Shown here piece by piece: positions 4,707 to 56,778 of a DNA stretch of 64,000 nt. The stretch covers positions 806,001 through 870,000 of the forward strand of contig NW_002060954.1 of the NCBI RefSeq assembly GCF_000150275.1, given 5' to 3'. The first letter of the stretch is position 1. Each line of letters begins with the position of its first letter. The translations under genes and the position numbers were made by a program. The DNA comes from Trichoplax adhaerens. Its lineage: Eukaryota; Animalia; Placozoa. Under the pieces are notes generated by a model. That model saw nothing but the letters and a program-made list of their open reading frames with translations, was not told the DNA's origin and ran no database searches.

Positions 4707-7395
4707 CTATATTTTTTTGGCGCATATCCATACATTATCCTCATCCGTAGGGAAATGCCATGATTGGTCATTAGTTTGGACTACTGTATCGTAAACAGGA
4801 CAGTTCTGTAATAAAAAATAAAGGTAGAAATAATTACATTAAAATATCACATCAATTAAGATAATTGGATAGCATAGCTCTTTGATTATGTTGTAAGTTT
4901 TACTTGCCGTCAAGATAAGTTTCTTTCCTTTTCGGAAGCGTTCAACGCGAACTTGGTGTCCGCGCAACCATTGCAAAAAGTCTTTCAAGAGCGTCAGACT
5001 GAAGCCCTTCTTAAAATCTCGAAATTGATCATCTGATATTAACTTAACATTCATTCCACCATGTACGGCGGCATATAAAAAGTACACATCATCGCTATGG
5101 CTATCCAAGAACAGAGAAATCAAAATTCATTTATAGATTATAAGATATTGTTAAAATCGCATTATTGAGCATCAACTAAATATAGCATAAGAGTACATTA
5201 AACGATTATTTATGACTTCATCAGGCAGATATAGTAATCTTTAATAGAAATATATAACTGAATATCTATTGCATACTTGTTTGGACACAAGAATACTCGG
5301 CAACTGGAAAAGATACTATCAATCATGGCTTTATACTTGGTAGACTTGTTTGACTCCTTTAAAAGATGAATTCTTGCAATTAGCAGTATTTCTTTGCCGA
5401 GTGCCCTGTAATGTCGTATCACTTTCAGGATCTGTTAAACAACAAATTTCTAAATTTCAAACTTCACAGCATTTTATAATCCACTATAGTACCACTAATC
5501 AACAAAAGCTGGTGAAGTTATTAGAAAACTAAACTATCTTGTTTTTCCTTGAGTACTTTTTATTCCTCGTAACAATTAGAATAGACATGTTTCACAAATT
5601 ACCTTCAAAGGATCAAAAGAATTACGACCATGGGCTATGTTCAGTCCATCAATAACGATATCTACTTTACGAGTAGGATGGAGCCATTGACAGAAATCTT
5701 TGAAAGGATCTTGACTATATTTTACGAGCACCTTCTGATCAGGGGAGCCGTAAGCAATTTTACCGCTATAATCTGACATTATTGCATTACTGTCACCCTT
5801 ATATTTCTTAAAGATTTCACCACTGGATATTGATTGCGATATAACTTCTCGCAAGCGTTCTTGTCGGTCGGATGTTAGTTCGATAGATTCTAGTTGCGCT
5901 TTGCAAGATTTGCAGTAACCACTAAATGTCAACAATAGATATGATCAGTACAACAGTTGCAACAGTATCGATGTAAAATCGACTTGATTTTACGCCTATT
6001 AAGATGATAAAGTTAGTGCATCACTGTTTCATAATTGTGCATGTAAATCGACATGATAAAAATTTTACTACATTACTAAGTAAGGGTATGCTATTACTGT
6101 ATGTTACAGCAGCCAATCTGTCAATATTAAAATATTTCATAATAATAATAATTGTGCCAAACATTTTATTATTGTAAATTCTGATATACTACATGTGAAT
6201 AAATAAAAATATTTTAAAGTCAATCATTTAAGCAAACATTGCTATACCTGTGCGTAATCGCTGTATGGCGTATTTCCCAATTGCTCGTAGGATGACTAGA
6301 GAAGATAGATAATTTTAAAAAAGATTAAAGAAAGTAACAATTACTGTTTGCAAGTTCTAGTGATAGAGTGTTATAAGCTACACAAAAGAGTCCAATCTGA
6401 TGTGATTCAAGTTGTCTGATGCTATTGCTTTTAATCACCTTCTAAACCATTTCAATATAGAAGGTTTGAGATGCGAACCTATACGCAAACCTTCTCTCCG
6501 AAATATTTCATAGATATGTTGAGCTAATTTAAATATTTCTGTTGAATCTTGGCTAATTGAATTGCAAAAACAATATAAATGAACGAAAAATTGAAGGACA
6601 ATTTTTACATGCCATATTGTATGATCGATGTTATTATGACATCGAGCGAGATTTGTTTACTGACCTTCTTGCACACATTTCAATGATATCACAATAGATA
6701 TTATCATCAGGGAATAAATATAATTTATCTGGATTCTTGATTTCATTTAATAAGTCAAAGACTAGTTGATGTTGATTGTCTAATGCAGCTGCAGAAATTA
6801 ATGGACTATAGTTTCGGGCTTTACCATATATACCTTTGGATTGCATTTCTCTGAGTAAGTTTAAAGCTGTTACCCAATTGTTCATTTTGGAATATCCACT
6901 TGCTAAAGTGCTATATGTCGTAGCATCAAAAGCTACATTTTGTAGTCTTATTTTTTTTTCACATTGAATCATTTTATCGAATAAGTTATACCTGATTACT
7001 AAATACAGATACGAATTAAACGTACCGATATCTAGAGTGACCGATTGGTTAATAGATTGATCCATTAATTCAATAGCTTCATTAATAGTATCCTGTTTAC
7101 AACACCATGCCATTCGCTTACGGTAGTAATGAGGTTTAGTATCGTCATCAGGATCGTACGGGATTTTCCATTTTTTCCGATGTAACTTTAAACAGTCGAT
7201 CGTGAAGTTTTGTTTCGATTTTTTATTTATATTTTGATCGAATATCAATAAATGATGATCATAACGATGAGACCATAAATGGATGAACTGAGATGTTGTA
7301 GCGATAATACGTTGTGGATAAAGAGAAGGCGAAGATCGAAGAATTGAGTATCGCCGCGTAGCATAATTTAGGTAATATAATCCACGAGCATTCAT
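4707..7395 (-). CDS. PRORP: Mitochondrial protein-only RNase P catalytic subunit (PRORP/MRPP3), about 7 exons
   Basis: Arg/Ser-rich N-terminal presequence, PPR repeats (TTYSTLASGYSK, RNYSPLISAAA), Zn-binding GYCKSC, NYN nuclease motifs DIVIDGLNIAH, DDVYFLYAA and LISDDQFRD, and C-terminal SWHFP...WIC with stop at 4707-4709. Confidence 0.93.
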
Positions 7396-8265
7396 AATTT
7401 GAATGTTGATATTCTTCTAAAGTGGTTGCAATGGAAAAGCAGGCAATTAACGAAAGGCCAACTTTGTAGTGCTGGAACAAAAATAGGTTCTTGAATAAAC
7501 TAGCAACAAGTTGTCAAGTGTAATTTCCACGATGTATTCTAAAATAATTGTACACGTACACATATACACGCCTGTGTGCATCGATGATATTTCTATCTAC
7601 TGATGCTACTGCACATTAGTGTACAACGAACCGTATAAAACAATAACACAAAGACCTTGCCATACTACCGATCATTACTGTTGGATATTTTTGAAATTTA
7701 TGCACAATAAATAGATTCTTGTTTATTCGTCTATTTGCCGATTTAACTGCTATTGCTGCCAAAGTCGTGGTTCGTGGCTTTAAGTATGGAAAGGCTTTAT
7801 TGACAAGCAAATCAGATACTTCGTGATGATAACAAAATTGCAGTAATATTAGAGCAGAGTTTCCAGGGTGATTCTAGCTCCAACTATCACCATCACATCA
7901 CCATGTGTAGCTATTCATACCTGAGCAATTTTTGTATTAGAATTTTGTGACAGATTTTCATCCGCTAATCCCCAATATACTGTACAGTACTGTAATGTAA
8001 TATAGTGTCTGCTTCAGGGTGCCGTATGCACATGTACAAATTGTACAGTACAGTATGGTGTTTTAAAATTAAGCTCAAAAAGGCGCCAGAGTTCAGGATC
8101 TACAGTACAGTACAGTACTGTACTGTACACTGTACTATACTGTACTGTACATTGTGCTATTTACAATATTATGTGGAACTAGCATACCGGCAACGACTAA
8201 ACTCCATGGTTACAATCTTGAATTGAGCACAGGAAGGTGAAATTCATTGCAACGATTATTTTGGA

Positions 8266-8341
8266 CATTATAAGAGTAAGATGAGCATTAGTTGTCTTAG
8301 TTACATTATAAAAGTAAGATGAGCATTATTTGTCTTAGTTA
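8266..8341. repeat. 38-bp tandem duplication (2 copies)
   Basis: cattataa(g/a)agtaagatgagcatta(g/t)ttgtcttagtta occurs twice head-to-tail with 2 mismatches. Confidence 0.9.
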
Positions 8342-9658
8342 CATGTAGCTCTTTATCAGGTAATAGCATGAGTGAAGCGTATTGTATTCAAGAAAAAAAA
8401 CAACTACGAGTAAATTAGTTGATTTGTCGATCCAAATAGCCCTAACCACTGCACGTACTGTCATAACACTGATCAAAGATACAATTTATCACTGGTGATA
8501 CAGCTCCAGAAGTACGGTAGTTTATTCATAATACATATAGTAGAATATAACATTATCATTAATGAAACATAATTCTATAATATATCACAATGATGATATT
8601 TAAGTCTCAAGTTGCCGTAAAAGCACATTATGAAGTAAAGTATTGTTACGGTGTTGCCTTGCCGTTAGGATAGTTTAATAAGTACAGTAGTGCTGTAGCT
8701 AATATGGAAAATATCCATATTTGTAGATAAGTAATGCTTTAACGTGGATGTTGTTTCTGATAGTTCATTACATAGTTGATATTGATTGCTATTGTGTGAT
8801 AGACAGTAGTAACATCATTCAAGTTCTAGTTGATGATAGTTGAATTAGACGACCTACTGTACGTGCTTAGATTAAGATTACTGTAAGTATGAGTAAGAGA
8901 TTCGAAACATTTAATGATAGAAAAGCTATATAAGGAACATATCAGTTCGAGATGTTTCTCCTAGTGAAATAATAGTAATAATAATACTGTTGTTGTTTAC
9001 AAATTAGACGTTTCCTATATAGATGGGAATATTTGAGTTGAGTGGTATGGTGAAAAGTTGAGATGTATCTTTGCTAATAAAAGTTTTATCTTTACCGTAA
9101 TTTGCTGTGTGTGCTTAACGTTAAGTAAATGGGCGTTTAAGTCAGTAGCTACTTATAATAAACTTTTACTGTACGTTACCTTATTGCAGAGTTGAAATTG
9201 TGACAAATATGGTATAATACAGTAAGTCCACGAATTTTAAAAAATTAAATATACTGTATTTAGATTATCTGGTGATGTATATATAGGAATGGCCGTAACA
9301 TAATAGCTTGATCGTAGTGTCTACATCAAAATAATCATGCACGCATGTAATCAATTCTTTTAAATCGCTTATACTGTACATTAAGTTGTAATACTTTAAT
9401 ATTTTTAGGGAATATCTTGTAGCGAATTTTATTTCTATCGATATTGCAATTGTTTTGAAGAAATGGACGACTGAAATACGTATACAAGTACAAGCTTACA
9501 GAGCAGAATTTTACCCTCCAGAATATTTTCTCTGGAAGATTGGTTGCTATGGTCTGGGATTTGATTTTGCAATTCAAGCACGAGCCCATAGGTGGTAATT
9601 TCAAAAACGCTATTATTATCCTGGATAATATCGTACACCAGGTTACATTTAGTACGTC

Positions 9659-12218
9659 ATGATGGAGGAAAGCTTATTTTCCTTAGAAATATTAATAGAT
9701 TGTATCGAAAATCTACAAGTCCATTGTGCTTTGCCGGCTATATCCTTTCGATTTCTTGATTTTCCAATTAACACCATTTACCAACTTGATCCTCAAGCTG
9801 TTGACGAATTAAAGCAACAATATTCATCAGATCAACTAAATTCATCATTTCTACCACGAGATATTGAACAAAAAGTTCGAAATTACGATGGTAGCTACAC
9901 CATCAATCGAGGTAAATCGTGCTTATTTAAAATGAATTTAAAAGATTTACGTGAGTATTTATCCAGCACACCTTTATGTCTCATGATCATTGATGTTTGG
10001 CAAAAAGTTCCGAAATTGGTTGGTAGCATTTTGATATCACTAAATCATTGCATGGAAAAGATCTATGCCAAAACTAGTAGATTGGATATTAATATCCCAG
10101 TTATTATAGGAGAGAAAGGTACTTTTCCAATACATAATCTAATGGGAGCTAAAATAGGAATGATGTCGTTAAAGTACAAACTATTAAGTATGGGGCAATC
10201 TCTACTACCTCATGTTACTGATAATCTGTCAACTGTAAATCAACAACAGCAGTCTCTACTTCAAGCGGAAGTAAGTAAAACTGTAAATGCTTTAATAAAT
10301 GGACCTAATGATGAGCATGATAAAGAGCAAAGCCTACCTGTCAAGTCATCGAAAAAAACTGTCGAAACGCAGACTGAAGTTAAGAAATCAAAACTCAGAA
10401 AAGAAAATGAATTACTCTTATACAAAGAATTTACTCAAGAAGATAGAAATATTCCACAAAATATATCCGCAAATATATTTTGTCCGGTACCGTTATATTA
10501 TAATAGTTTATCTGATGATCAAGGATTAAAAGTAGGGACTTGCAGATATCAAGGTGAGAGTTCCGACGGCAGTGATTATGTCCCTGAAATTTTAGAGGTA
10601 GATACTTCGCCGGATTCTATTAAATCCCAGATGCATAAATTTCAAAATCAAGACAAAACTATTCCGGTCAAGGGCACTGATTCCCGACAAGTGCATTCAC
10701 GAAGTTTATCTGTTTCTTCTAAGGCTCAACTTAGGAGCAAACTTAATGAATTTCCAATATTGAATGCTCTATTAAGTGAAATTTTAGATCTTGTTAAAGA
10801 AGTTGATGTCGCCGACGATGAAGACAATTCAGAAACTAATTCCAGTTTGATTCCACATAGTTCCAATGAAACAAATGAAATAACTTTACATCATAATAAG
10901 GACAAATACACTTCAAAAAAGGGTTCAACTTTGAAATTTCGATCTACTAAAACGCAGCGATTAAGATTTGCAAAAATAAAAGAAAAAAAACGAGTTGATA
11001 AGATTTCAAACGATGTTGGCGATCGTATTGTAAATAATAATATAAAAGATGCAAAGGTTGATCCTAAGGCGCGTAGTGAATTGCATTCTAATGTTATAGA
11101 AGAAATAAATACCGATAAAATGGACAGCTCTAGCCTAAATAAAAATTACTCTAGCTCTGAAAATGGTGTAGATAATAATGCAACTGTATCATTTACCGAA
11201 AATCATACCGGAAATTCAGGGAGATTACAACCCGAAAAGGATAATAGCACTATGGAGGAAGGAGACATTAATAACATAGAGGTATTATCACGAAATGATC
11301 CTGGTTTTACATCAGATTTTCAAGATGATGGAGTAAATTCAGTATCAAGTAAAAACTGGAATTCACTTCCTGATATGCATGGCCTTGTGAAAACAACTGA
11401 AACGGTAGAAGAACCAGATCTTAAATCATACCACGAATCATGTTCTCCTGTAGAAGGCCAGAGCTCATCCGATGTACAATGTGAAGAGCCGAACTTGAGG
11501 CCTTATAGTGATGCAAAATCGTTAGCATACTCATATGTCCAAGATTTTTTGAAAGCAGAAGAGAACAAAGAACCACCAGTAGCAAGGAAGGAAAGTTTAA
11601 ATACGAGTAAACAAGTAGATAGCAAGAGTTCATCTGCTTCTGATTCCAAGCAACAAAGCTTATTGTCAGAACACGAAGATAGCTCGCACGGTGATCCCAG
11701 TCTAAGAAATAACGAGTAAGTAATTTTTAGATTATTTGGAATAGTTCTTTCTTTTCATACTATAAGTCGAGTATATTCAACCTATAATAAGTTGCTAGCT
11801 ATAAAAATCATGTATGACATAAAAGCAAGATAGATGTAAAATAGTAAAAATTTAACAGCATAATACATACCGTAGTGTTTATGTAGACGATCAGTCCGAG
11901 AATTCGTAGCCCACAAGTATAAACTTAGATTGGCAAATAATTAAATGTCAACTTCTGTATTGATGTTATAAATATATATTGTAAAAATGAGTGAACCAAT
12001 GTACAATAGCACTTGTAGATAGCTGCGTGTACTGTAAATGCCGATAAAACTATTTTATTGCGATTCGGAGAGTTTATGATTTTGATTAATGTATATTTTC
12101 TTTCTGTATTAAAAGTGGGGACAGATCAGACGATGAATATTCACAAGATTTTGAGGAAGAAAGATCAGACGAGGAAGAAAGCTATCCTAGCGATTTTGAA
12201 TCTTTCGACGAGAATTAG
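9659..12218 (+). CDS. MAP10: Microtubule-associated protein 10-like (exons 9659-11715 and 12116-12218)
   Basis: N-terminal LFSLEILID...PAISFRFLDFP...GKSCLF...NLMGAKIG matches the conserved MAP10 N-terminal domain, followed by a long Ser/acidic low-complexity tail. A GA|gtaagt donor at 11716 splices in frame to an acidic terminal exon (DDEYSQDFEE...YPSDFES). Confidence 0.82.
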
Positions 12219-13888
12219 CATTTGTGAACTATAAACATATGATGCTATGTAGTCATGTAGTCATGTATTCGGGAGATATACTGAAAGTTAATTGCGCTAT
12301 TCAATGACCATGATATTAGCTATCTTTTGCTGGAATTCTTAACATTTCTAGTTACTATACTTAAGTGTATTGTAAATAAATAATATGTCAAATTTATTTT
12401 GCGAATATTACATGTATATTGGATTAAATTGAAAATGGATATGATGATATTATCTATAGCAGCAATGAATAGCTGTTTAAGTTTTTCTAGGAATAGCAGT
12501 AAAGCGACGATACTTATCGTACATAATCATCGTTTCTTCTATTTCGAATCTAATTGTATGCTATACTGTAATGGACTACTTTAATAAATATAATATAAAT
12601 ATCCTGTCTAAAGTAGCTGCTTATTTATCTTTGATAATAAACTGATTTTCTACGGTGTTATCATCTTACATTCATAGATATAGCATCTACAAGTGATAAC
12701 ATGGATGATTCGTCTTAACTTTCTAATAATTGATTTTACTCAATAACTAAAATTAATACAACAATATTTATAGATATGGATGTCTACCGACTAATTCTAG
12801 ATAATAATTATATAGTAATATAATTCGAGATAACTGGACTATAGTATTTCAATTCGTATAATTTAATATTGATCAGAATTGTAATCACAGTGGATCGTGC
12901 AATCAACTAAATCTCCATTACTATGTACATGTATTAATATGACAGTGATAACGTAAAGTAAAAAGTACATGTAGTGTATGGTACCCGAAGTATCACGAGC
13001 GAAGGTTCGACTAGTACCTATTACGGTACAACATACAGTATAATTTACTGTAGCAAACTATAAATACAGTGATTCCTACTGCAAGTATTTTAATTGTAAT
13101 TGTCATATACTGTAAGTTAATAATCGTTCATTAAATTAGAATTAGGCTTCCTATTTTTAATGATAGTTCGTACTGAGACAGGAGGCTAATTTTAAAATTT
13201 TTATCCGGTAAATTCTGTTAAATTAATACATTTAATAAAGTATAAGCGACTAGGAATTAATAAGGAGATGAGCCTATTACCGTAAACGATAATACTTATT
13301 TCCTAGTTCCAACCATCTTCATTTTGAAGATTTGATTGTTTACTACATTTGTAATGACGCTTTGATAGGATTTACATTTAGAAAAAGCAACTGATAAGAA
13401 TAAAACGTTCTTAAAGGACAATATGTAAGCCGACAGTTTCGAATTGTTGCTATATTACTGTAGCTCTTTCGTAAGGCTGCTGCTATGCAGTCGTACGCTT
13501 AAATACGTAATTATAAGGATTTCCCGTTTAAAGATTTCAATCTTTTCATGACACAGCAAGATAGGTATTTAAATACGTATTCGCTTTATTAATTACCTGA
13601 TAGAATCGTAGTTAAACTATTTGTACTATTTGTACCATAAATACAGTTGACATTTGTGCGATGATGAAAATTTTCATTATTTTTCTATAGAAATCTCCCT
13701 ATAAAAACATGACGCTTGTTATCGATTGATAGTCCGTGAGATTCACAAAGATAATATCAGCAAATTTAGCATTCGGTCATTGCTAGAATCTTATTTACAA
13801 TATTCAGGCTAATCAGGCAGGCGGTGATGAATGTTTTTTAGAATGTGCATAAGATACAATTTCTTAAGCTATTTAAAATTCTATGCTA

Positions 13889-14777
13889 TTAGAATCCAAG
13901 AAGTAGTAGCCATTTGGTAATAGGCTTTACATGTTTGCCTTTGATAAAGATTTGGCTATTTACTTCATTTATTTGAATCTGTACATCTTCTCCCAATAAG
14001 CGCTTTAAACCTTCTTTAACAGCCTTGAAAATATAAATGTAATGATATGATCAACAAGTATCTTCAAGCTAACTCATAAAGCACACGATACTTACATGTA
14101 AATCTCCTTCAATCTTTCTAATGATAGTCAGGTGTAAGGTGCGCCCTTTTCTAATCTCGCTATATACTGGGATATTATTCGTTTTGGAACGATTGATACG
14201 AAAGGGTAAAGGAGGAGGTGAATCTAGTAGAATGAAGTTACATGAGTTATGATATCAAGAAGGCTGTTTAAATCTCTAATTTTTAAGTGTGTAATGCAGT
14301 CATACTCTACCTAGTGGAGGCATCCATCCACTTATGGAATCAATTTGGCGTAAAGGGATATGGGGATAAACATTGTAATTTATTTGATGATAAGCCTTTC
14401 GGTCACGTTTTTGGTCAGCTGGAGCCAGATTTTCAATTTGTCTAGACCACTGCAATGATATCAATTTTCAGTATTAATATGTGCAGAACAGCAAACAATA
14501 ACAATAAAAAATTGCATGGATAGGATAGCTTTCACATTATACCATACGAGTATTTGTCAGTATGCTCACGCTGTAAATAGCTCTTGCAAACTGCTGTACT
14601 GTACTGTGCTATAAAAAACATACAGCTAGATAACTTGTAGTTTATTTATTGTATGCTTTAGCAAGAAGTGATACCTTGCAATGGAAAAGCTTTATGTTTA
14701 GTGGTACTTACAATAGATCCATAAGCTAATAGACGAGTTCGTGAACGGCATAGCGACGAAGCTAAGATAGGGAACAT
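13889..14777 (-). CDS. MRPL49: Mitochondrial ribosomal protein L49 (exons ~14777-14712, 14608-14543, 14449-14311, ~14223-14096, ~14025-13889)
   Basis: Only partly in the ORF track. Reverse-strand translation gives presequence MFPILASSLCRSRTRLL, then SGWMPP, LPFRINRSKTNNIPVY, TIIRKIEGDL, INEVNSQIFIKGKHV and KWLLLLGF*, which are typical of mL49. Confidence 0.92.
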
Positions 14778-14965
14778 GGTGTAGTGGCAGCTTTTAGAGA
14801 TCCGTCCGTGAATGAGCTTCAGCCTCCAAAGCCTCAAACTACTCAAACTAGTGTTGTACGTACTAGTACGCTTCAAACGATCAACGGACGCATTTAGTGT
14901 CGTACGATCTTGAAATTCTTGACCGAGCTGACAGTGGTAGTACTGTGACACTTATGTTGTTACAG

Positions 14966-15565
14966 CGCATGTGTTTTAATACTGTATGAAGGACTGAGAG
15001 GTTTCAGACGGACGGATTATTTTAGATTTAATTAAATTAAATAGATTTAATGCGAAATGAGGCCCAATGTCACAGGACTGTACTGTACAGTGTACAGTAC
15101 AGTACAGACTACAGTGCATGTGTTTTAATACTGTATGACGGACTGAAAGGTCTCAGACGAGCGGATTATTTTTTTACAGTAGATTAAAACACACGCGCTG
15201 TACTGTAGTCTGTACTGTACTGTACTGTACAGTACATCCAGTACAGTACTGTGACATTGGGCCTCATTTCGTCTTAAATCTACTTAATACTGTATGACGG
15301 ACTGAAAGGTATCAGACGGACGGATTATTTTAGATTAAATAGATTTAAGACGAAATTGGGCCCAATGTCACAGTACAGTACAGTACAGTACAGACTACAG
15401 TACTGTACAGTGCATATGTTTTAATACAGTACAGTATGACGGACTGAAAGATCACAGACGGACAGATTATTTTGGATTAAATACTGTAGATTTAGATTTA
15501 AAACGAAATGAGGCCCAATGTCACAGTACTGTACTGTACAGTACAGTACAGTACAGACTACAGTA
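14966..15565. repeat. Four-copy ~150-bp tandem repeat array, with part of copy 2 inverted
   Basis: Unit gcatgtgttttaatactgtatgacggactgaaaggtntcagacggacggattattttagattaaatagatttaagacgaaatgaggcccaatgtcacag(tacag)n actacagt begins at ~14966, 15116, ~15285 (truncated) and 15412. Segment ~15184-15288 reads as the reverse complement (gtgacattgggcctcatttcgtcttaaatct). Confidence 0.95.
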
Positions 15566-16997
15566 CCGTATTTAGTATTTGAGCCTCTAACTGTGCTGTA
15601 CAGTGTACAGTGTACAGTGTATAGTACAGTACAGTAAGACTAAACGTGACTGGTGGGTTAACGGGGGCGCCATCGAAGTATCTTAGCATTTGACTTTCTT
15701 TGAGCGGATTAATTCGTTGGCGCTTGAATCTATAGTTTATCGTATCCATCTGAACATAAAGATCCATTTTGTAAGTTGAAGAAGTAGAAATTAGTTTTAT
15801 GTTGGCAATTAAAAGTATTTGTAGTTTCGTTAAGACTTTATTTTTTAAGATTTTGGGTCTCAAATTTTATGATGATCGACAATGCGTGATAAATTTTCGT
15901 GTTTTCTTTGTATGTATGATCAAGGAATAAAGATGTATCAAGTTGCTGTTTAGTTAGTTATTTAGTACAGTAGACTATCAGTAGCTAGTAGATAATGCAT
16001 TCCACTAGTGAAACAGTATTATTGATTATTGTAATTTTACGTATAGTTCAGCGCTGACCAGTTGATAAAAGGGAAGAAATTCTAAATTTGAGGGGTTATA
16101 ATAGTGACATTCATTGATGCTCGATTGTAATATCATTCAAGTTTGAGTTGCACATCACGATGGAGTAATCAGTCATTTATACGTTTGTGAAATACGGTCG
16201 AACTCTTTGTACACATAGGAGTAATAAAATGACAAAATTTCCGTATAAATTAGAATTATTAGCGTAAGACGAAATGCTCGGTTTTACGGTAGTTTGCCGC
16301 TACATCTATACCTTAGACATAGCACTACACTATAATAATTCATAATGGATTAATTATTAATAATTTGATGGTGAGAAATGTTGTAGCTAAATTTGTAATC
16401 ACTACCACAGATTATCATGTACAGATAGAATACGAATTTACTACCTGTGGTCATTAGAATTTTTAGTGAATACGAGCTCTAGGGCAGCCGCCTTGCTAGG
16501 CTCGCTTAGTCGCTTTTATTATCGCTATTTATTTGGTGCAAAAGGGTCTAACTAACTAATAGCAAATAGCGCGAAATCCATGGATTGCCAAATGTTCCTT
16601 TAGTAATCCATGATTAGGTGCGCGGTTGGGTGTATCAATTATTAATTTTCTCACAGTCACTACGAAAATGTCGTGCGGGTTTATTAAATTACTTTTACTG
16701 CTATTGGTCATCCTAAAGTACTCAGCTATGCGTATATTAGTCAATGATACGGACTGTGATTTTTACTTGGAATCCCACATTTTAACCCGTATTAATGCAC
16801 TGTAATATCAGAGATAGAGTAGTTAAAAACATTTGTATCATAATTATCAACCAGGCGAGGGATTCTTAGTACTGTATAAAATTTTTCACTTTAATACACG
16901 GTGCTTGAAATATGTAATCTGCTAACGACGTTAGAGTTCTTTATCTAATCTACCTTGCACATCTTGATAAAATTTCATAGTTAAACTTCGATCAAAA

Positions 16998-19900
16998 ATG
17001 GAAAATCAAGCAGATATGCAAGTAGTAACTCAACAACAACAGCAACAGGATGAAGCTACAAATCCAACAGCAGATGGAAATGCGACTGCAGAGGATGAAT
17101 TAGAAGCATATTGGAAACCTGTTAGACAAAATTCAAGCGACTTCGATTCTTGGACGTACTTACTACAATATGTCGAGAAGAAGGTATGATAGGATCTTAA
17201 AATAACAACATGCCGATATTATAATAGCACTTTAGCAGATGATAATAACCGTGGATTTTACTATACTAAATGTAAAAATTAATTTCTATATGTATAGGAG
17301 GACTTTAGCTACATTTCTGGGGCTTATAACGAATTCTTTAAGCATTATCCCTACTGCTACGGATATTGGAAAAAATATGCCGAATTAGCCATTAAATACA
17401 CTGATTCCAATCAAGTTTTACAGGTAATTATCGACATCTTCCTCATGTGTACATTTCAACTAATTAAATGGATCAGTAGATAATACCAAATATATCGTTA
17501 GAATATGCTTTGGTAACTATTTTTGGTTGGTGACCGATCGTACTCGTAGCTTTTGCAGTTTTATATATCCTTAATGACAACGTTCGTAGGACAGTTACAG
17601 TTACTTTTTATGGAAGTAACCGCTGGAACAACCTTGGAAATAGTATCTTGTCGACAAAGTACAAAGAGAGCAAAAAGCTTAAAGTATTGCTTTGTGATAC
17701 TTTGTCTTTCACTAGTTTCTACGCTATTAATCTAGATAAAAGTGCTAATTATGATATCGGTTACAAATGTGATGATTTATTCTTTCTGGTATATTATAAT
17801 CAGATCTATGAAGCTGGCGTAAATGCTATCCCTTTGAGCATAGATTTATGGGAAAGCTATCTATCATTTTTCTCAAAATCTGTTGAAGAAAGTGGTGAAA
17901 ATAGAATAGATGAAATTCGGGGGTAAGATTGAATATGTCGATTTTCTTTAAGTACTTACTCTTTATTTTTATTTTTTAAACAAGCTGATGATTGTTAGTA
18001 TTACGTCATACAGCTTTGAGTTCGTATTTACCGTAGATAATGATCTAAAATTAACAGTTAGCAGGCTATGTTAATAAAAGAGCACAATATAGCTGTAAAA
18101 GTTAAAAAAGTCAACTATATCTTGTCATGTAAAAAAGCTCGCCATTGATATTCGTTATACAAAATATCATCAACTCTCTTCAATCTCAGTTTAAAGGTAA
18201 ACGAATTTGGTTACCTCTTTGTGTACATTAATATTTGTCATTCTCGTGGGCAACTGTAAAAAAAATCACCTATTGATGTAATTTATTAAGTATATAAATA
18301 TTCGTTACACGATTAGTTTATACCAGCGGGCCATTGCAACGGCAGGATTGGAGTTTATTTCGGATGTTTTATGGAATTCTTATATTGCTTGGGAAAAAGG
18401 ATCTGGATTACTGAAAAATGTTATCCCTATATTCGATCAAATACTTAAAATCCCTACTCGACAATATGGCAGTTATATTTTAAGGTATGTATACTGAAAT
18501 GGATGTTAACCGTAAATGGCTTCGTAATTGAAGAAATTTGATAAATATGTCCCTATTGAGATTTACACAATTTATGTCATTTAGTTTAACTGATTTTATC
18601 AACAACAACACGCCTGAAGATATCTTGTCAGAAGAAGATCTTGCAAGTATCCAATCTGAGATTGCCTCATCCGGTGATGCAGAGCAGGTGACACTGTCAA
18701 TATAGATAATTTGCTAAGTAGATTATTTATTAGTAACTTTTTTCAATTTATAATACCTTATATCATCTACTTATACTATTATTTATTTTCTAGCCAATTA
18801 CTACAGAATCAGTACGGGCTTGGCTGATAAAACCTAGACAAGCTCTGTACAGCGCAAATGAAGAGGAAGTTAAGAAGCGTTGGGGATTCGAGGATAAGGT
18901 TCGAAATTCTTAATGCTAACATTCTTGTTCTGCTGCGAGATCACATAATTATTATTTCTGGTTTAGAATTTGTAAATACGCTTACTTTTTTTCTCATAGA
19001 TTAAAAGGCCTTATTTCCATGTTAAACCTTTGGAGCAAGATCAACTTAAAAACTGGAGGGAGTACTTAGACTTTGAAATTGAGCAAGGAGATCAGAATCG
19101 TATTCGTGTATTATTCGAACGTTGTTTGATCGCTTGTGCTTTATATGAAGAATTCTGGCTTAAGGTGGCTATCGAACATAGATTTTATACTATAGAAACT
19201 GGAGTGCATTACACTTGCAATACTAATTCTATTGATTTCCTTGACGAAACAGTATGCGAAATATATGGAAGATTGTAATCCTAAAAGTTCATTAGCTGTT
19301 TTTGAGAAAGCATGCACGGTCCATTTGCCTCGAAAACATAGTATTCATATCGCTTGGGCTACTGCTGAAGAGAAATTTGGTTAGTAAAATTTATGTCTAA
19401 GGGTGATAATATGTCATTCAGGTAAGAATTAATGTCATGCGGTTTATTCCCGTTTTTACTAGGCAATTTTGATCGAGCAGATGATATCTTGAAGACTTTA
19501 TTAGACCGTGTGCCTGATTTAGCTGTAGTTACTATGCATCGTATAAATTTAGCTCGCCGTCGTGGAAACGCTGATAATATCAATGGTTTATATTCAGATG
19601 CGATTTCTAATTCAAAATCATCTCTTACGAGATCTCTTTATATTTCCCAGCTTTCTAAGTATCATCTCCAGGTACGCGATTGCTGTTATATGGTATGTCA
19701 TTTGTTTTAAAATTCAAGTATTCTGACTGTAAACTTTGCATTTTAGGTGAGAGGTGATGTCAATGCGGCAAGGCAAACGTTAACGGAAGGGATTGAAAAG
19801 TGCAAGGCAAGTAGTATTAGGATTTAAATTTAAGCTGTCATTGTTATGTTTACAATACTAAAAGTTAATTTGTGTTTCAGGAATCGGAAGCTTTGTATTG

Positions 19901-25167: not shown

Positions 25168-27796
25168 ATATTATTTAAAAATCTAAAATCATAGTTACTA
25201 ACGTGTAGTACACTGGTTCCCAAATATACCCTGAGAATAATATACTGGTATTATTGTTTTGGTGCAAAGTGTGCATCAGTACTGTACAGAGTGCAGTCTT
25301 TGCAAAAGTTACGTAGAAATTTCGATGTAGCCTGAACAACTATTTATTAGGGTGCAGAGCTTAAAAAAGTTCGTATCATGGCAGCATGCTTCTACCAGTG
25401 TTGTAGCCCCACGGGACCAACTAAATTATCATACCCATACAACACTGGTTTATATATTACATGCTGCATGAATGCATTTAAGTATTCCGCTGCAATTAAT
25501 ATTATTTAATGAATCTGGTAGAACAGTTTCATGTTGTAGCTAATATCATATTTATAGACCACAATCGATTATAAATGATGTAGCAGAGCAAACTAAATTG
25601 CACCGCATGATCAGTTGAACAGCTTGAGCCTGACATATACGAGTAAATATGTACAACATACGTGCATTACAATAAATCGTGGTGTCGTGCATACAGTAGA
25701 TCACTACAATATACAGTATTCATGCCATAAATAATACGTGTACATGCAGTAAGCAACAGTATAATAATCAGATAAAGTCATATGCTTTCAGTATAATATA
25801 CTCAGTGTAAAGTGATGGAGAGTGGTAGAAATGTAAAAGTATAAGTACGTAAACATTACGCGAAGTATCACGAAACGAGGGGTTCGACTAGTATGTAATG
25901 GTATAATAACGGTACACTATACAGTAATAATAATAATAGTTATAATTAATAGCTATACTCTGGTCTCGCGATGATTTAAGGCTGAACCGCTGAAGTGACC
26001 ATATGGAAATGATTGAAGATTGTATAAAGTAAAAATTATATATATATAAATAAGAATACTGTGTACACATAATTTGTTCGTGTTAAATTGACGATGAATG
26101 GGTAGTAGATGTCGTGGCCCCCAATTTTATCCTCTATATTTCTAACTCCTTCACCGTTTACAGACGAACGACTGCAATATATTGTACAATATTAATTACT
26201 GCACGTCTATTTCAATTAAATATTAATTAATTATTCCTATATTGCCCCGTGTTTACTTACTACTAATTTATACAGTATAATAATTAACATCTATATATAT
26301 ACAATATATATATATATTCTCATGTATATATGTCATATATATAATTCTATACGAGCATAGTTCCATACTGGTACAGTATAACAGGATACGCATGCAGTAA
26401 GTATAAGATATACTTTACTGTACTTCGTATACTATATATATACGTATACGTATATAAATTACAAAGATAATTTTATGATCATATCATTTGGATTCTACTG
26501 AAGTTATGATCGATACTCAACCTAGAGATTTGTTTATATCGAATGCATCACTATCAATTTCTATATGCATTGCATGAGACAGTCGAACGTTACTTTTATA
26601 TCACTATATTCTAATTATAGCTAAAACGAAGCCAAAGCATACCGCGGTTGCTAATATCTTTAAGAAAAAAATGAACTATACCATGTACTGTATTGTATTA
26701 TACCGAATCGTGCGGTACACTGTACGAGTGTACGTCGACTAGTTACTCGATTCTGCACAATGCAGTCAGTGAACTCAAAGTTTCTGTCAAGTTCGTCAAT
26801 CTTATTTGCTGCGCGTGTACGTCTCCAGCTAATAATGCAGTAAATCAGAATAAAAGATAGATTGCTGATATAGTAATGGTATAAAAATAAGAGATTTAAT
26901 AACTTACTCTATGCTTACCTCAATATTAATATAAATAACAGAAGTGACTTTGAGAGCTGGTGCTTAAAATTGTAGCAATAACCTAGTACACCCTGCATTA
27001 ATACCCATAAAATAACAACTGGAAAAGCTCGTTTACTGTACAGTACTGGACTACAATCTCTCGAGCGCCGTCGTTTTGTACAGTACTGTACAGTACTGTA
27101 CTGTACAGTCTGTAGAGACCCTTTAGAGTACTGTAGAGCTGTACTGTACACTGTACTGTGGCATGGGCGTAAATCTTACGCATACAGTAGGCCGTATACT
27201 CTACGCAGTCCTGTAATACAGTAGATCATCTGTGAACTTTGATGGCAACCGCAACTTCCACCAGTGCACTCTGGTTGACCGATTGAGGGTGTACTGTATT
27301 CTATTGTACTCGACTGGGATTGAAGGAACAACTTGTCAAACCGGTTAAGCTAAACTTCACCCTTAAACAATACAGTATTAACAATAGCAGGGCTGGGGCT
27401 ACCAAAGAGAAAAGATCATGTTATGATCTCCATGCAGAACCATCTTCATGTTAATATCATATTTGATTAAAATTAGAATTGATTATATATCAGTAGTAGT
27501 AGTAGTCATGTACATTATACATGTACAGAAGGTGTTGCAGGAAATGTTGCACTAGGTTTTATCTTTTCTTTCAGTTCTGTACTACAGTATTTTGAAAGTA
27601 GAGACCCTCACACTGCATAGTCAGGTATACTGGACATACTGTACTGTAGACATTGGGCAGTCAGTAAAGTCGGATTGACACTTGACTCCGAGACAATATG
27701 TCTATTACATATACTGTACACAAGCAGCTAGTGTAAATTGTTAAAATGAGACAGTATATGAGCGTATAATAATTAAGAATGACTGAGGAAAAAAGT

Positions 27797-28073
27797 NNNN
27801 NNNNNNNNNNNNNNNNNNNNNNNNNNNNNNNNNNNNNNNNNNNNNNNNNNNNNNNNNNNNNNNNNNNNNNNNNNNNNNNNNNNNNNNNNNNNNNNNNNNN
27901 NNNNNNNNNNNNNNNNNNNNNNNNNNNNNNNNNNNNNNNNNNNNNNNNNNNNNNNNNNNNNNNNNNNNNNNNNNNNNNNNNNNNNNNNNNNNNNNNNNNN
28001 NNNNNNNNNNNNNNNNNNNNNNNNNNNNNNNNNNNNNNNNNNNNNNNNNNNNNNNNNNNNNNNNNNNNNNNNN
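27797..28073. other. Assembly gap (N run)
   Basis: Run of N bases directly abutting the inverted repeat. Confidence 1.
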
Positions 28074-28403
28074 TCGTCTTTAATCAGAACTAAGAGTGCA
28101 CAGTACACACAGTACAGTGTAAAGTACTGTACCCTCGGTGTACCGTACTGTAGGCCCAGCCATAATAACCCCGATTACTCAGACACTCAGGCTAAATAGC
28201 TTAAACGATGATACATCGATTCGATTTCGAATGAAATTTGAGGTACAGACTCTTAGAATAATGTATCATCGTTTCCGCTATTTAGGCTGAGTGTCTGAGT
28301 AATCGGGGTTATTATGGCTGGGCCTACAGTACGGTACACCGAGGGTACAGTACTTTACACTGTACTGTGTGTACTGTGCACTCTTAGTTCTGATTAAAGA
28401 CGA
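28074..28403. repeat. Long inverted repeat: 143-bp arms (28074-28216 and 28261-28403) with a 44-bp spacer
   Basis: The reverse complement of the left arm matches the right arm at 140/143 positions by manual comparison. All three mismatches lie near the loop. Confidence 0.93.
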
Positions 28404-48810: not shown

Positions 48811-50081
48811 TTCTTTCCTTTTACGTTACTGAGGGATCTGGCAAAAGTTGAATTCAAATAGACCTCTACGTAAGCGTATGACAGTATGCATGATATTAAA
48901 TGGATGTGTATATTTTTACGTTGACAAAAGCTGTATAGATGCAAGTGTATGCATCATGCAACACAGACGTATTTCATTGACTAAAATAGTAAAGAAAAAT
49001 GATAGAGTGCAATGGACTATCGTTGGCGCTGCAGTCTTTTATAATCCTTCCGACCAAGAGCATATACAAGTATTGTTGCTAATTTTGCTTCCTTGTATAC
49101 AGTAGCTGATTATAGCGAGTATGAGTGTAATAAAGCAATCAAGTAAAGGAAACTTCAGATATTGAAATCAAGGATTATTACTGCTATGTGCTAGACATAA
49201 AATATGTATAATCCATTGCAGTTTTATGATCTGGGAGGTGAACCGTGGTCACTCCATGGCTACGCTACACCTCAGAGAATGGCATTTTCACTTAGTAAAC
49301 ATTTGGATTAATGCTATGATTGAAGGAGGATTTTCCAACTACACAGAGAGTTTATATTTAGTCAGTCATTCATATCCATTGTACAGTATGCACCGTAAAT
49401 GCAGTCCCTTTCCACTAGGCATTGGTGAGCGTTAAAATTGCAGATTCATTTAGCAGTATCATTTTATAATCTGTAGTTATTTAACAATTGAATAGTACGT
49501 TATAATCATCAACCACTTAAGGCAATCGTGATTGTTGGACAGTATCCCTTTCAGATTGCAAAATGAGCTTTTTACTTTTTACAGTCTAGAACGCTACGAC
49601 TACATACAGTGTGCAGTAAACGTTTCTGATGCTACACTTGAGTCATGTTTACGTACGCTCATCATCGTCTCACAACTAAAAAGTAAATTGTTACTTTATG
49701 AAGTTTGGTAAACGTAATCTTACCTTCTTCCGAGATTAGCTTAAAATATCGTCTATCAGACAGTTCGTAAAATAAAAAGGTTATTGCATATTTGAAACAG
49801 TTTAGCCAAAGGTTTTTGATTGAGAATGATGATATTGCCCTTGTCCAAGGTCTTGGCATTCCACTCTCTTTTCTCATACGGACTCGTAACTGTACTAGAC
49901 TGACTGTACAGGATGGTGTAGACTCATGCCCAGTATGGTCACTTCACCGACTGATCGACTCACACAGTCAATAAGAAGTAGTTTATCAGTAGGCACGGTA
50001 CCAAACTTAAGGACGCTCTACAGCATTTAATACAGTACCCTAACCAGTTTCCATGCACTACACTCATACTGATTTTCCGAC

Positions 50082-50090
50082 TTTTCCCGC
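50082..50090 (+). promoter_or_regulatory. Canonical E2F-type site (TTTTCCCGC) in the KNTC1/Sororin divergent promoter
   Basis: Matches TTTSSCGC and lies between two mitotic genes. Function is inferred only. Confidence 0.4.
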
Positions 50091-51468
50091 TAAAAACCAA
50101 AATCAAAAATTTTCCAAACAAAAGGTACAGTCCGTCCAGCACAGTACATGTACTGTAGCTGTAGTGTACATTGTACTGTACTACCTTAGAATTGGAGTGG
50201 TAGTGTAGTGCACTAAGCAACCAACTTGTTGCATCGTCAACCCTTGTATGGTCCTGCACACGGTACTGTATTTTACCGTATTACGGCCCAGTACAGTACT
50301 AGTTACTCGGCAGTGATCTACAGACAACCGCCATCATATCGTCGTCAAGCGTCCGTCAATGGACCCCAGTAGATAACGGGTAAGCGCAGACATGATTGCA
50401 ATAAATTAAAGTAAAGAAATACAAGTAGATTAAAATTCTAATATAGAGGAAATTTAGTATTGCAGTTAAATCGGTCCATGTTGTAAGTTATCAGCGATTT
50501 TCGTGAAAAAAATTTCGATCAAATGATTTCAAAAGTGTATATACTGTAGTGGCCAGGCTATGTTAAAATCTTCAAAAACGGACACATCCTGCCCAATTAT
50601 AAAACCAAATTAATTAATCCCTTTTTTTTCAAATATTATTTATCGACTATTCAAGATAAAATATTGCTGTAGTTGCTAAAAAATTCTGTATTGTATGTTC
50701 ACCGACTTGATATTTAATGAATGGTTAAACCAGAATTCTTGATTCCTTCTTCTACAGTACAGTACAGTATCTTGTTAACGCATCCGTTTATACTACTGTA
50801 GTTGTTTTCAACGCCGCAAATCCTCTGTACAATGTGATCCCTTTTAAAACTTTGATATGTTTGCATAGTAAAAACGAGAACGAAGACGCACAAAAATACC
50901 AATCATTATTAAAACTATGTATTTGTGATCAATATTGTACGAATTGATGCAAAAATTACAATGTCTAGTGTAAGGGATCGCTTCGTGCATGGAGTCTATA
51001 CGCAGAAAATAGTGATCACACGAGACGATTAGATAATTCTTTCTTCTCAACTTTCATACGCGCTATTGACGTTTCCTCACCTAGTGAAAGTAAAAATAAT
51101 GCTGTAAGCTGGTATCAAGTTGCAGTATCTTACCGCTGTAGAGGCTTCTGCATCACTACGAAAAAGAATGCATACAGTACAGTGCAATCTTGTGTAAATC
51201 AGATTAAGTGCTTCCTTTACAGTTGTGTAAAAATATCGCTATTCCAAGGCAAATTGATAGGCCGTGTGATGCTGTCAGGTAGTTTAGTGACCATAATTTC
51301 TTGTAAATTTACACTCTAAAATGTTACAGCTAAGCGGGAATAAACAGTACTCTAGGAAATCGTTTCACTTCCAATAATTATCAATGGAAAGCATGCATGC
51401 ATTAGCTAATTCTAAGTCCTAAATTGCAATTGTATGTTAGATTAGAATACATTTGTAATCAATATACA

Positions 51469-52962
51469 ATGGAAGAAAGAAAGTTAAGATCTCGAAAAAG
51501 GAAAACAAGGAGTAATTTATCGGTAAGTACATATGTAAGGCATGGCATATCCTTACTGTAAAATGCTTAGCTACTTTGTGAACATATCATAAAGTGTGAA
51601 CTTAATTTAAATTTACGTCATGAATTTTATGAACTGATCTGATATGCCTTATCCTAGTACTACGTACTACGTCTACTTACTCCTATGCTGATCATAAACC
51701 GTTAAGTACAGAACAGTCTCCTTTACGCATCAAAAGTCCTTACGACATGCAGATCTGCTTAGTATTTGCCAGAAAGCGAGTGGGTTAGATGATTGCCGGT
51801 ATTCGTGCATCATTACTAGTTGTACAATTCATGTACTCTACAGTAGAAGTTATCACTTGAAATACATTGGTATACTGTACAGTAAGTCTTAAATTAATAT
51901 GTACAGTAATATCAATTTGCAGTAGTGATATACGATATGGTAGCCGATTGAACTATCTAAAATTACTTTTAAAGGCAATTGTAGTCCATGATCATATTAC
52001 TCAATGAATACAAATTAAGCTTTATTTTTACAAAATAATTTCATCACGCAAGAGATAAGTAAATACGAGTGCACTAATTTCTGCGGTATTTTGCTAAATC
52101 TAATTGATGTACACAATTAAAATGACTTGCAATTTTATACACGAATCTGATGTACTTTCGCGTAATATGGTATAGTATGTTAAATTGAGAATTTGATGTG
52201 ATAGCTCGGTCGTTTAACAGTCTGGCCTATTTATGGAGCGCCTAATTTTTACACAGATTAAATACAGATCATAATTATTTGTTCCTAACCTTTCCTTCAA
52301 TTATATTTGTTGTATAAACCCTAGGAAAATGATAAAGAGAAAGAACTATTGCCAGGGCTTAGATCTGAGCTATTTGATTCCCCTAATAAACTTAATACAC
52401 CGGCCAATATCAAATTTTCAAGTACCTTAGACGAATCAAATAATCTTGTATTAGAAGATTCCTGTTTTGGATTTAACTTCTTAGAATCTGAACTCGAATC
52501 CTTGCCCACGTCACCTACAAAATCGGTTTCCTCTGTTACATCTTCAATGTATTCGATGAACGATAACTGCAAACCTGCTCATAGGAGAGCATCTAGGTCT
52601 TATTCTAGGATTCCTTTACAAGAAATTGACAATGAACAACCCTCTAAGAAAAAATCTAAAAAATCTAAGAAAGCCAAATTAGAGGTATAGTAACGAGATC
52701 AAGATCAAATAATTAATTTTACTCATATCCAATGTTATCCTAGACAAATGTATGCATAACATGTAGGTTACATATACCTATTATAATCTAAAATTTTACC
52801 ACTGTGTTTACCAAAGATACTATTCAAAATTTAATGCATGGTTCGTAAATCCTAATAAGCTGTTATCTATCTAATTAGGACGAACGTGACCGTAAAGATT
52901 GGATAGAAAGCGTTACTTCGGAATTTGATATGATTGGCTCTCATGAATTGAAAATTGTCTAA
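51469..52962 (+). CDS. CDCA5: Sororin/CDCA5-like cohesin regulator (exons 51469-51522, 52325-52684, 52879-52962)
   Basis: In-frame GT-AG splicing. Contains an FGF motif (DSCFGFNF), S/T-P sites, a basic patch (KKKSKKSKK) and a C-terminal Sororin-domain-like DWIESVTSEFDMIGSHELKIV*. Confidence 0.8.
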
Positions 52963-55206
52963 TATGCATAATACGGCCTATTTGGTGTAAATTGTTCACT
53001 TGGAATTGCTTTTGTGATATTAGACAGCACATCAATTTAATTTTGTACAAATTTATACGATACCTAAATATTATTTATATGATACGTGTATGCTGTTATC
53101 ATTCGTTAATCAATTTTAAATGTACTAGAATTTAAACGATCGTTTTACAAGTATGCGCTATCGTGGCGTTTTTATTGTAGTTTAATTTCTTCCAGTAACC
53201 GAAGGCAGCTGAACCTAAATTCGATTAATTATTGTCACCCCAGATCAATACCAGCTACCACGTAATAAGTTATCTTTATACTGTATATACGTACATATAT
53301 ATATATATAAAATACGGCTGTAATGTTACGGTGAGGCTTTGTTCTCTTCAGTATATTCTCTTTTAAATAACTGGTGAAGTTTATCTGTTTACGGTGCAGC
53401 ATAAACTGCTCTAAACATCTGTAATCTGTAATTGTCAAACTTCTTAGTTTATTTTCCGATAGCTATAGAGTATTAGTATCCAAATACATGAATAAAATAC
53501 GGTATTATGAAAGAGCATGCATGGTATCTGCTTAAAGGTTTGACTTATTTACTACATGATTTGCTCAGTAGGGCTCTGGATTTGAGTTATCTAATGGACT
53601 ATGGTATGACCAGGAGTCTATTAGGAGTAACGGTGCTACGTCTCTTGAGTGGTGATGCAATATGCGTTTGTACAGGTTAAGTAGTATTCTTAGTAAAATT
53701 CAATACGTTACTCCAAAGTGCCATCATTGTTTTGGTCTCGTGATGCTATGACTGATAACTCGTCTTCAAATAATGTAGTTTATAGTATATGAGTAGCGAG
53801 GTTTCTCGTCAAGTATCGTATACGAGTACAGTTATGCGAGACTAAAATTCAGAATCGATCTTCATCATTAGTGATAATAAAGCTTGTACGAAAAAAAATA
53901 TTACATATTCAACCAGATTTAATTGCTGGTCATCATATACCCTGTAAAGGCGCTATTTTATATTCCATGATACACTGTCATACGTGTTATACAAAAGACA
54001 AAGAGATCATTCATTATACCATTAAATAGGTCTCTTTCTAGAAATTCCTAGTGCAAGTAAATGCTCCTATATATATTTCTTGAATTTCTTGTAAGAGGTA
54101 AAAAGTTATAGTGGTATATGATAGCTATAATCCTTCATTTAACAATATACAACGATAACTCCCCTGAATAGAAATTGTGCTGATGAAATTAATTAATAAA
54201 TATATGCTTAGACTCTATGTAATGCAATATAGAGCCATTAACGCATCATGAAGAGTGCTGAGTGAGAATAATGAATCGCAGCAATATCTACACCGCATTT
54301 TAATACATTGTGACTGGAATACTACTCTGTTGTTGATACAAACAATAAACTCTGTAAAGTTAAAATGTAAAGGATTTAGTTTTTAGGGTGAACTATGAGA
54401 TACAATTAATTGGCTAAATTGCTCTAACTGATTAGTATTACCGGTATTACTTTAATAAATAACTTATGCAATCATATTTTCGAATTTATGCTAAATTGTT
54501 ACATATTGTACGTGTTCAACATTGACTTTGCTATGTATGATATAAGCGTATCCAAAGTTTCGCGATCCATATCATTTTCTTAGAGACAGGAATTGAAGTA
54601 AGCAATACAGTAACTGATTACACTCAGTATGGTCCTATATTTTACAACTTACGTAAATGTGATTAGGCTACTCGATCTAAACTTTACTGTAATACACTCG
54701 TATTTTATATTCAGGTATACAATATAGGTATTCTCATGAAAAATCCGAGCGTCGCTATCGATTTAGATTGAGTGTATTTGCATTTTAAAAGCTCCTCATA
54801 TGTATAGGATAGTGATACACATTATACGAACATTCGTAAATTTAGAGTTGTATTCTGGAAATGTCTAAAGTTATCTACGATAATTATGTTACTGATCCGG
54901 CATTACGATAATCATGACGTTGTGGTATATCATCTCAGTACTGTACATTAGTAAGTACAGTATATATACAGTAAGTACATTACGATACGTAATGGAATTT
55001 GGCCTTAATAAGATCTACCGATAAAAAGTGTCAAACTGAGGTAACTATAGTATTCCACTAGTATCAGATGGCGATATATTTAGGATTGCTATTTCCATTC
55101 ATTATACACAAAAGATTAGATACATTATTCGCCGCAGATGACATGTACGTAAGTAAAATGTCAATATAGAATTAAAGTACAGTAGACGTATACTCCACTA
55201 ATCTTA

Positions 55207-55378
55207 TAAGTTAGTCCGTGTAGTGACTGTATAATTTAATAAGTTAGTCTATGTAGTGACTATATAATTTGGTAAGTTAGTCTATGTAGTGACTGTATAA
55301 TTTGGTAAGTTAGTCTATGTAGCGACTGTATAATTTTATAAGTTAGTCTATCATGCTCAGTAGTGACGGTATAATTTC
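55207..55378. repeat. 33-bp minisatellite, about 5 copies
   Basis: taagttagtctatgtagtgactgtataatttgg repeated head-to-tail; the last copy carries an insertion. Confidence 0.95.
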
Positions 55379-55700
55379 CACAAATGGGGGCAATACTCGT
55401 CGTATACGCGTATTTTTGCTTTCATATTATCGTTTAGAGTAACAAGCCCGCATCATGCCCGCGAGACTTCGATCTAATAATAATGAATAATAATATTATA
55501 TCTACTAATACAGTGTTATATAATATGAAATCAATCTTAAAAATGCGAATCTATTTTTACAATAATTAATGCTGTTGGTTACGTATTTAATTAGAATAAT
55601 TAATTCTATCATAATATAGTCATTTTATCAATGTATCGCTACCACCAGTACTGTATGTGATCAGTGTACCATAATAGTCGATGATAACACTACTGTACTC

Positions 55701-55781
55701 CTAGAATAATGTATCATCGTTTAAGCTATTTACGCTGAGTATCTGAATAATCGGGGTTATTATGGCTGAGCCTACTGTACG
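55701..55781 (+). repeat. Dispersed, diverged copy of the sequence in the 28.1-28.4 kb inverted repeat
   Basis: tagaataatgtatcatcgtttaagctatttacgctgagtatctgaataatcggggttattatggctgagcctactgtacg aligns with ~28254-28333. Confidence 0.9.
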
Positions 55782-56581: not shown

Positions 56582-56778
56582 CACGTGCATAGGGTATAAA
56601 ACATAAATGACAAAACACCACTTGGTAAAGCTTTGAATCGTTGCACGTAAGTTATACAACAGTCCAATCGACTAGCAGTTGCTTAACGGAGGCAGTGGTG
56701 ATTTGCGATCTACTTAGAATTCATTTTGCGGGCTTGTACGCCAAGAAATGTAAAATAAAAACAACAAGCCAGGTAAGT
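56582..56778 (+). promoter_or_regulatory. Candidate PC promoter and non-coding first exon (CACGTG E-box, TATAAAA, CAG|GTAAGT donor)
   Basis: gcacgtgc at 56582, TATAAAA at 56595 and a perfect donor at 56773. The PC ATG at 58856 is directly preceded by an acceptor (tttacag|ATG), so an upstream non-coding exon is expected. Confidence 0.45.

Follow-up and report, generated by a model that had tools for sequence, protein, structure and literature searches.

Intergenic DNA of Trichoplax adhaerens is rich in five-base CAGTA and CTGTA units that have been inserted at TA dinucleotides. The word which they form, TACWGTA (W being A or T), is highly specific, the orientation of neighbouring units within tracts is close to random, and the genome harbors a family of elements whose ends read TA|CAG. 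In our judgement it is fairly likely that each unit is a scar, left when a TA-targeting cut-and-paste element of the Tc1/mariner superfamily with CAG ends was inserted once and excised again, and that replication slippage contributed further units in a secondary way.

The excess of the word is evident both genome-wide and in the window, by which we mean the whole 64-kb stretch of DNA that was analysed (AT-rich, G+C 33%; source assembly of 105.6 Mb in 1,414 contigs). TACTGTA (94 occurrences) and TACAGTA (77) are the two most frequent 7-mers of the window, compared to about 7 each expected from base composition, and they rank first among 420 anagrams of the same composition, the median of which is 15. 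Genome-wide the two words sum up to 173,096 (86,210 + 86,886), and the reversed control word of the same composition to 22,347 (11,035 + 11,312). In a non-redundant sample of 202 kb, partly picked around the foldback element family described below (the genome-wide pattern counts are unbiased), the TA-NNN-TA words with CTG (449) and CAG (434) reach approximately 20 times the expected number; the runners-up CGG and CCG, each one transition away from CTG or CAG, reach approximately 4 times, and all others stay below 2 times. For 169 strictly isolated words, the flanks could hardly be told from those of ordinary TA sites, and no clear target preference emerged.

The insertions can be examined in a short array, where paralogous copies lie side by side, together with the tracts in and next to it:

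14961..15566, plus strand: local array with a unit of ~150 bp (unit alignment and genome search)
14961-15109: array unit 1
15112-15185: array unit 2, truncated
15177..15181, plus strand: CAGTA insertion at the TA of 15175-15176, private to array unit 2 (unit alignment and public-run contigs)
15200-15282: inverted array piece, reverse complement of 15493-15566
about 15284-15405: array unit 3
15396..15407, plus strand: junction of array units 3 and 4, with two extra five-base units of opposite orientation (CAG, then CTG)
about 15408-15566: array unit 4
15425..15436, plus strand: two CAG-oriented five-base units, TACAGTACAGTA (tract list and unit alignment)
15484..15488, plus strand: CTGTA insertion at the TA of 15482-15483, private to array unit 4 (unit alignment and public-run contigs)
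15527..15553, plus strand: tract of five units in mixed orientation (T T A A A; tract list)
15081-15104, 15213-15234 and 15374-15390: tracts resembling that at 15527..15553
15597..15636, plus strand: tract of 7-bp variant units (TA-CAGTG-TA), passing into 5-bp units

The array is composed of about three and a half direct copies of the ~150-bp unit and one inverted piece. A search of the genome with this unit gave 5 hits, all of them within the array, and a dispersed 150-bp family was therefore rejected: the array arose by tandem duplication on the spot, includes one inverted piece and is found nowhere else in the genome. An apparent element at 15112-15200 (TA, CAG..., ...CTG, TA) is accounted for by the inversion within the array and was not counted as mobile.

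The first-pass annotation had quoted four examples of exact five-base differences between the array units, and the unit alignment recovered all of them at the positions given. Two insertions are private to a single array unit. The site of CAGTA at 15177-15181 is empty in array units 1, 3 and 4 and has no adjoining five-base unit; the insertion itself was found in contigs of the public run X1. The TA matching the CTGTA at 15484-15488 is bare in array units 1 and 3 and in the inverted copy, and here also no unit adjoins; this insertion was found in contigs of runs X1 and X3, which are labelled as two different organisms, and thus it predates their split. At 14980, 15129 and 15288 the array units 1 to 3 contain one CTG-oriented TACTGTA, compared to the two-unit TACAGTACAGTA in array unit 4, and the junctions between array units hold 0, 1 or 2 extra five-base units, depending on the copy. 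The other indels between the array units differ in kind, being a length change of T3, a 6-bp tandem duplication and a 10-bp AT-rich piece.

The comparison was extended to all paralogous sequence in the window and in the fetched loci, the alignment of which yielded a catalogue of 455 unique indels. CAGTA or CTGTA placed exactly at TA makes up 10 of the 27 five-base indels; seven of these ten events are not tandem duplications, while three are perfect ones. Two insertions lie within the conserved core of the foldback family (L025:1573, compared with at least 16 other copies, and L038:824) and, since each is private to one copy, their polarity is that of insertion. In a 2.4-kb pair of 97.8% identity on another contig, the differences include a CTGTA and a CAGTA, each at TA, and a TA doublet. 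The clean insertion events are thus six in number (two in the array, two in the element core and two in the 97.8% pair), and all the extra bases are bounded by TA. In four of the six the TA site has no adjoining unit, and in the four cases with outgroup copies the polarity is resolved as insertion. The members of the 97.8% pair (C1414:11815400-11817850 and 12104070-12106520; L039-L046) stand 289 kb apart, the second amid ~19 kb of N, and TA-bounded pieces of 7 and 8 bp also distinguish them; instead of a true duplication, the pair may represent haplotypes that were not collapsed in the assembly.

In the literature the repeat is treated as an ordinary pentanucleotide microsatellite, (ACAGT)n, which would grow by replication slippage. 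As the main process this is contradicted by our data, and we regard it as a most improbable account of the tracts, even though slippage has left its traces. Most tracts consist of one unit only: in the window this holds for 121 of the 139 TA(CWGTA)n tracts. Where units do follow each other, the two-unit words counted on the plus strand genome-wide are AA 9,168, TT 9,462, AT 7,220 and TA 6,323, with controls of 8-21. In other words, 13,543 of 32,173 adjacent pairs (42%) are in opposite orientation and 58% in the same orientation, with the other bases of the unit intact. Slippage cannot yield such a pattern of inverted neighbours in otherwise perfect units, and it has no template where a unit was inserted at a TA standing alone. 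On the other hand, same-orientation neighbours are in excess not only genome-wide but also in the 202-kb sample (151 vs 107), and some tracts are pure in orientation. This excess, together with the three perfect tandem duplications among the ten events, identifies slippage as a secondary contributor, and only as that. Two points of the first-pass annotation have to be narrowed. Its reading of the runs as scars and not microsatellites leaves no room for slippage, which does contribute in view of the same-orientation excess and of the three tandem duplications out of ten. Its assertion that CAG and CTG are freely mixed stands for the interior of the tracts; the equality of the CAG and CTG totals, however, carries no weight, since either word is the reverse complement of the other.

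Our preferred reading, the excision scar, rests on the form of the unit. The canonical excision footprint of Sleeping Beauty is TAC(A/T)GTA, and we know of no other process that yields TA, C-(A/T)-G and TA. The reading is favoured because the unit has exactly this form. According to this mechanism, insertion would duplicate the TA, and excision by 3-nt staggered cuts would leave a CAG overhang on each flank. End joining would pair the overhangs with a central A-A mismatch, the repair of which in either direction would give TA-CAG-TA or TA-CTG-TA. Every scar would supply a new TA and, with local hopping, tracts of mixed orientation would accumulate in intergenic DNA, to which replication slippage would later add some units of the same orientation. 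We infer that the units were made by excision and that the transposase acts, or formerly acted, in trans.

Other joins are less conspicuous or differ from the canonical scar. The alternative-join word TACATGTA (Tc1-type, 4-nt) is enriched only ~2x, and there is no enrichment of the CAGCTG word expected from blunt joining. A 7-bp unit that is also anchored at TA (TA-CAGTG-TA or, as complement, TA-CACTG-TA) occurs 11,938 times genome-wide vs 675 for the control (~18x). These units chain in 7-bp steps, likewise with mixed orientations, as in the window at 15597-15625. The enrichment of a unit that differs from the canonical scar speaks against the excision reading; the 7-bp unit may have come from a non-canonical join in which 3 + 2 nt of the overhangs were retained, or it may be a scar left by a different type of element.

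A candidate for the kind of element which the mechanism calls for was found in the genome. Two copies of it lie in the window:

28113..28364, unstranded: copy of the foldback non-autonomous element, reading CTG at the terminal position on both arms
55697..55781, minus strand: single arm of the foldback family, bordered on the outside by TA and then unique flank and cut short on the inside at a TACAGTA word

With at least 72 candidate loci, the foldback family of which the inverted repeat at 28113-28364 is a member is dispersed over the genome, and it combines the features by which MITEs are recognised, namely terminal inverted repeats, dispersed copies and the lack of coding sequence. When the arms are aligned, homology between copies ends at the CAG terminus (consensus start CAGTAGGCCC), with TA before it. 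A pattern search of the genome found 56 such arm ends, 48 of them with TA preceding CAG, and none for the controls. Most copies, including both copies in the window, which lie in word clusters, are situated inside TACWGTA tracts. A TA duplication is compatible with four of the five full copies. If instead the duplicated target were TACWGTA-like and 7 bp long, one full copy would fit exactly and two at 6 of 7 positions. Since the flanks are usually TACWGTA words, the 2-bp and the 7-bp duplication are indistinguishable. Arms with unique flanks have only TA or GTA in common before CAG. The existence of a TA|CAG-ended family, on which the original proposal depended, is borne out by the 56 arm ends, while its target duplication could be either 2 or 7 bp long.

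The copy at 28113-28364 lies within a larger palindrome (28074-28403), the arms of which extend well past the element up to an N run at 27798-28073; the palindrome may be genuine, as an inverted duplication, or may have arisen in the assembly. Many copies of the family are single arms cut at varying internal points (L017, L018, L020, L028, L032, L033, L035 and L037), and the breaks run straight into TACWGTA-like words, as if later internal events had brought deletions. Approximately 350 bp from the single arm in the window, within the same word cluster, there is a 33-bp tandem repeat of 4.6 copies with 90% identity (55199-55351).

The family resembles the Tc1/mariner (Stowaway-like) MITEs in being short, non-coding and dispersed, with long inverted arms and CAG beside TA. 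Unlike them, it consists mostly of single arms and truncated copies, and an autonomous partner was not found in the assembly. It also shares the foldback structure, and a flank resembling a 7-bp palindrome, with the P/Galileo-like elements. Contrastingly, its arms with unique flanks have only the TA or GTA before CAG in common, and a 7-bp duplication of the P/Galileo-like type would yield 14-base doublets and not units that share TA in 5-bp steps.

The assembly contains four intact, single-copy transposase ORFs, one with a DDE_3 domain (358 aa) and three pogo-like with DDE_1 (525, 413 and 412 aa):

L001, 895-1971: transposase ORF
L011, 1039-2616, minus strand: transposase ORF
L012, 877-2118: transposase ORF
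L013, 1393-2631, minus strand: transposase ORF

Terminal repeats were found around none of the five Tc1-like and three pogo-like hits, and the assembly gave no hit to the mariner Pfam family or a mariner-type domain; it also holds a few helix-turn-helix fragments. A solved-structure search with the DDE_3 ORF returned no match, and the catalytic residues were thus judged by eye only: some ORFs are without one of the catalytic acidic residues, and L001 has A in place of the first catalytic D, whereas L011 has E and L012 has N at the third position. The four ORFs would be either domesticated genes or candidate trans-acting enzymes. The genome-wide search for a transposase provided four intact members of the superfamily as candidates, but these are single-copy and have no terminal repeats. 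So few single-copy ORFs match the published transposon content of 0.13% and the absence of any reported active element (PMC2871265).

One could go further and suppose that a Tc1/pogo-type transposase, present or recent, keeps a few dozen CAG-ended elements hopping locally in promoter regions, and that the scars, as its main product, built the dominant repeat. We hold this stronger version to be rather unlikely. Were it true, the enzyme could be encoded by one of the single-copy ORFs, which have no terminal repeats, and the repeat may since have been co-opted for a promoter or chromatin-contact function.

The age of the insertions was approached by comparison of four public runs with the reference over 12001-18000 (6 kb), where ~40 substitutions and 8 indels were found among the runs. 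Contigs of the runs break inside the array, and this indel count therefore excludes variation in the number of array units. The first-pass annotation had proposed that strains would differ by CAGTA or CTGTA indels at TA; none of the 8 indels in the four runs is of this type. Both array insertions are common to the runs that cover them. Taken together, these two observations indicate that the insertion activity may be old. The sequence GTACT at 14860-14864 of the reference is missing in X3 and X10, which leaves a plain TACAGTA; this is a change within a word and not an insertion at TA. The tracts are covered at hundreds of times the baseline read depth, and this shows that there are thousands of similar tracts with unrelated flanks. 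Among the copies compared, no site was seen that is occupied by an element in one copy and scarred in another.

The words are not evenly spread but are strongly clustered in intergenic DNA at the kilobase scale. The clusters and the genes next to them are the following:

7978..9378, unstranded: TACWGTA cluster in the promoter region that separates two divergent genes, the PRORP-like one (minus strand) and the MAP10-like one (plus strand)
27034-28352, 50031-51908 and 54606-58780: further TACWGTA clusters
5576-7395, minus strand: gene for a PRORP-like mitochondrial RNase P protein
9659-11719, plus strand: single-exon gene for a MAP10-like protein of 686 aa
58856-63503, plus strand: exons of pyruvate carboxylase

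All clusters of the window are intergenic, one of them upstream of pyruvate carboxylase, and 147 of the 171 words lie within 300 bp of another word. Such strong clustering counts against the scar reading to the extent that it is also expected from local copying or selection. One would argue that the word was inserted at TA without any transposon excision, e.g. by templated end joining, in which a unit close by is copied into a break at TA, or at breaks made by a domesticated nuclease, and spread locally from existing copies. The clustering fits this notion, as does the position of all clean insertion events within a few hundred bases of existing units; additionally, no active transposon is known (PMC2871265; our assembly searches), and the tracts also show many indels of other lengths. 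However, one would expect templated insertions of variable length and phase, whereas the unit comes in steps of exactly 5 bp, has TA on either side in every case and is identical to the canonical footprint. Also the word is not confined to the clusters: in the 42 kb without clusters, which make up two thirds of the window, 24 words compare with an anagram median of 10 and still tie for the first place among the 420 anagrams. Finally, elements ending at TA|CAG exist. Copying of this kind thus appears to us unlikely, if still the most serious of the competing accounts.

Alternatively, the words could be cis-regulatory or chromatin-organising sites that selection, and not mutation pressure, keeps abundant at promoters. 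It was reported that 54% of the ACAGT repeats lie at most 1 kb upstream of genes (PMC2871265), and a repeating ACAGT motif was chosen by a sequence-to-contact model for Trichoplax (bioRxiv 10.1101/2024.11.14.623548). The intergenic position of all clusters in the window points in the same direction, as does the depletion from long ORFs (2 words vs 17.8 expected), but this depletion is equally expected of any insertion that shifts the reading frame. Moreover, selection explains retention and not origin, and it cannot make exact 5-bp insertions at TA. As a replacement for the mutational account it is therefore very unlikely; as an addition, with its basis in positional association and an in-silico motif, it is compatible with the scar origin.

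Returning to the excision scar, the closest known system is the footprint of Sleeping Beauty and other Tc1-like elements, with which the Trichoplax units share the word itself, the TA flanks, CAG or CTG inside and the gain of 5 bp at TA. They differ from such footprints in number and setting, as there are ~150,000 excess copies, chained in tracts and mainly intergenic, in a nearly transposon-free genome. They also differ in that excision is proposed here from the sequence, in a genome with no known active transposase. The proposal that the runs are nested scars and not microsatellites thus stands on the TA-anchored insertions and the TA|CAG-ended family, and is weakened by the fact that neither an active transposase nor a pair of occupied and scarred sites was found.

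The abundance of the repeat is already published. (ACAGT)n was described as the dominant microsatellite of Trichoplax adhaerens, unusually abundant and promoter-proximal (Wang et al., 2010, PMC2871265), and the words discussed here belong to the same sequence class. In that work, perfect repeats of more than 12 bp are classed as microsatellites of the slippage type, and a transcription factor site is suggested; single units, TA anchoring, mixed orientation and likeness to a footprint, all of which are seen here, are not mentioned there. In the literature that we searched, no paper was found that interprets the ACAGT repeat as excision scars, and this reading is absent from it. To the published picture we add the TA|CAG-ended family, the genome-wide orientation counts and the second enriched TA-anchored unit of 7 bp.

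This oddity of the placozoan genome was published in 2010 without an explanation of its origin, and excision scars are probably where the microsatellite came from. If this is true, cut-and-paste transposition would be recorded in the ~150,000 excess words (about 0.7% of the genome) of a lineage that now looks nearly transposon-free, and past transposon activity judged by element content alone would badly mislead. It would also be a concrete route by which transposition creates promoter-proximal sequence and leaves no element behind.
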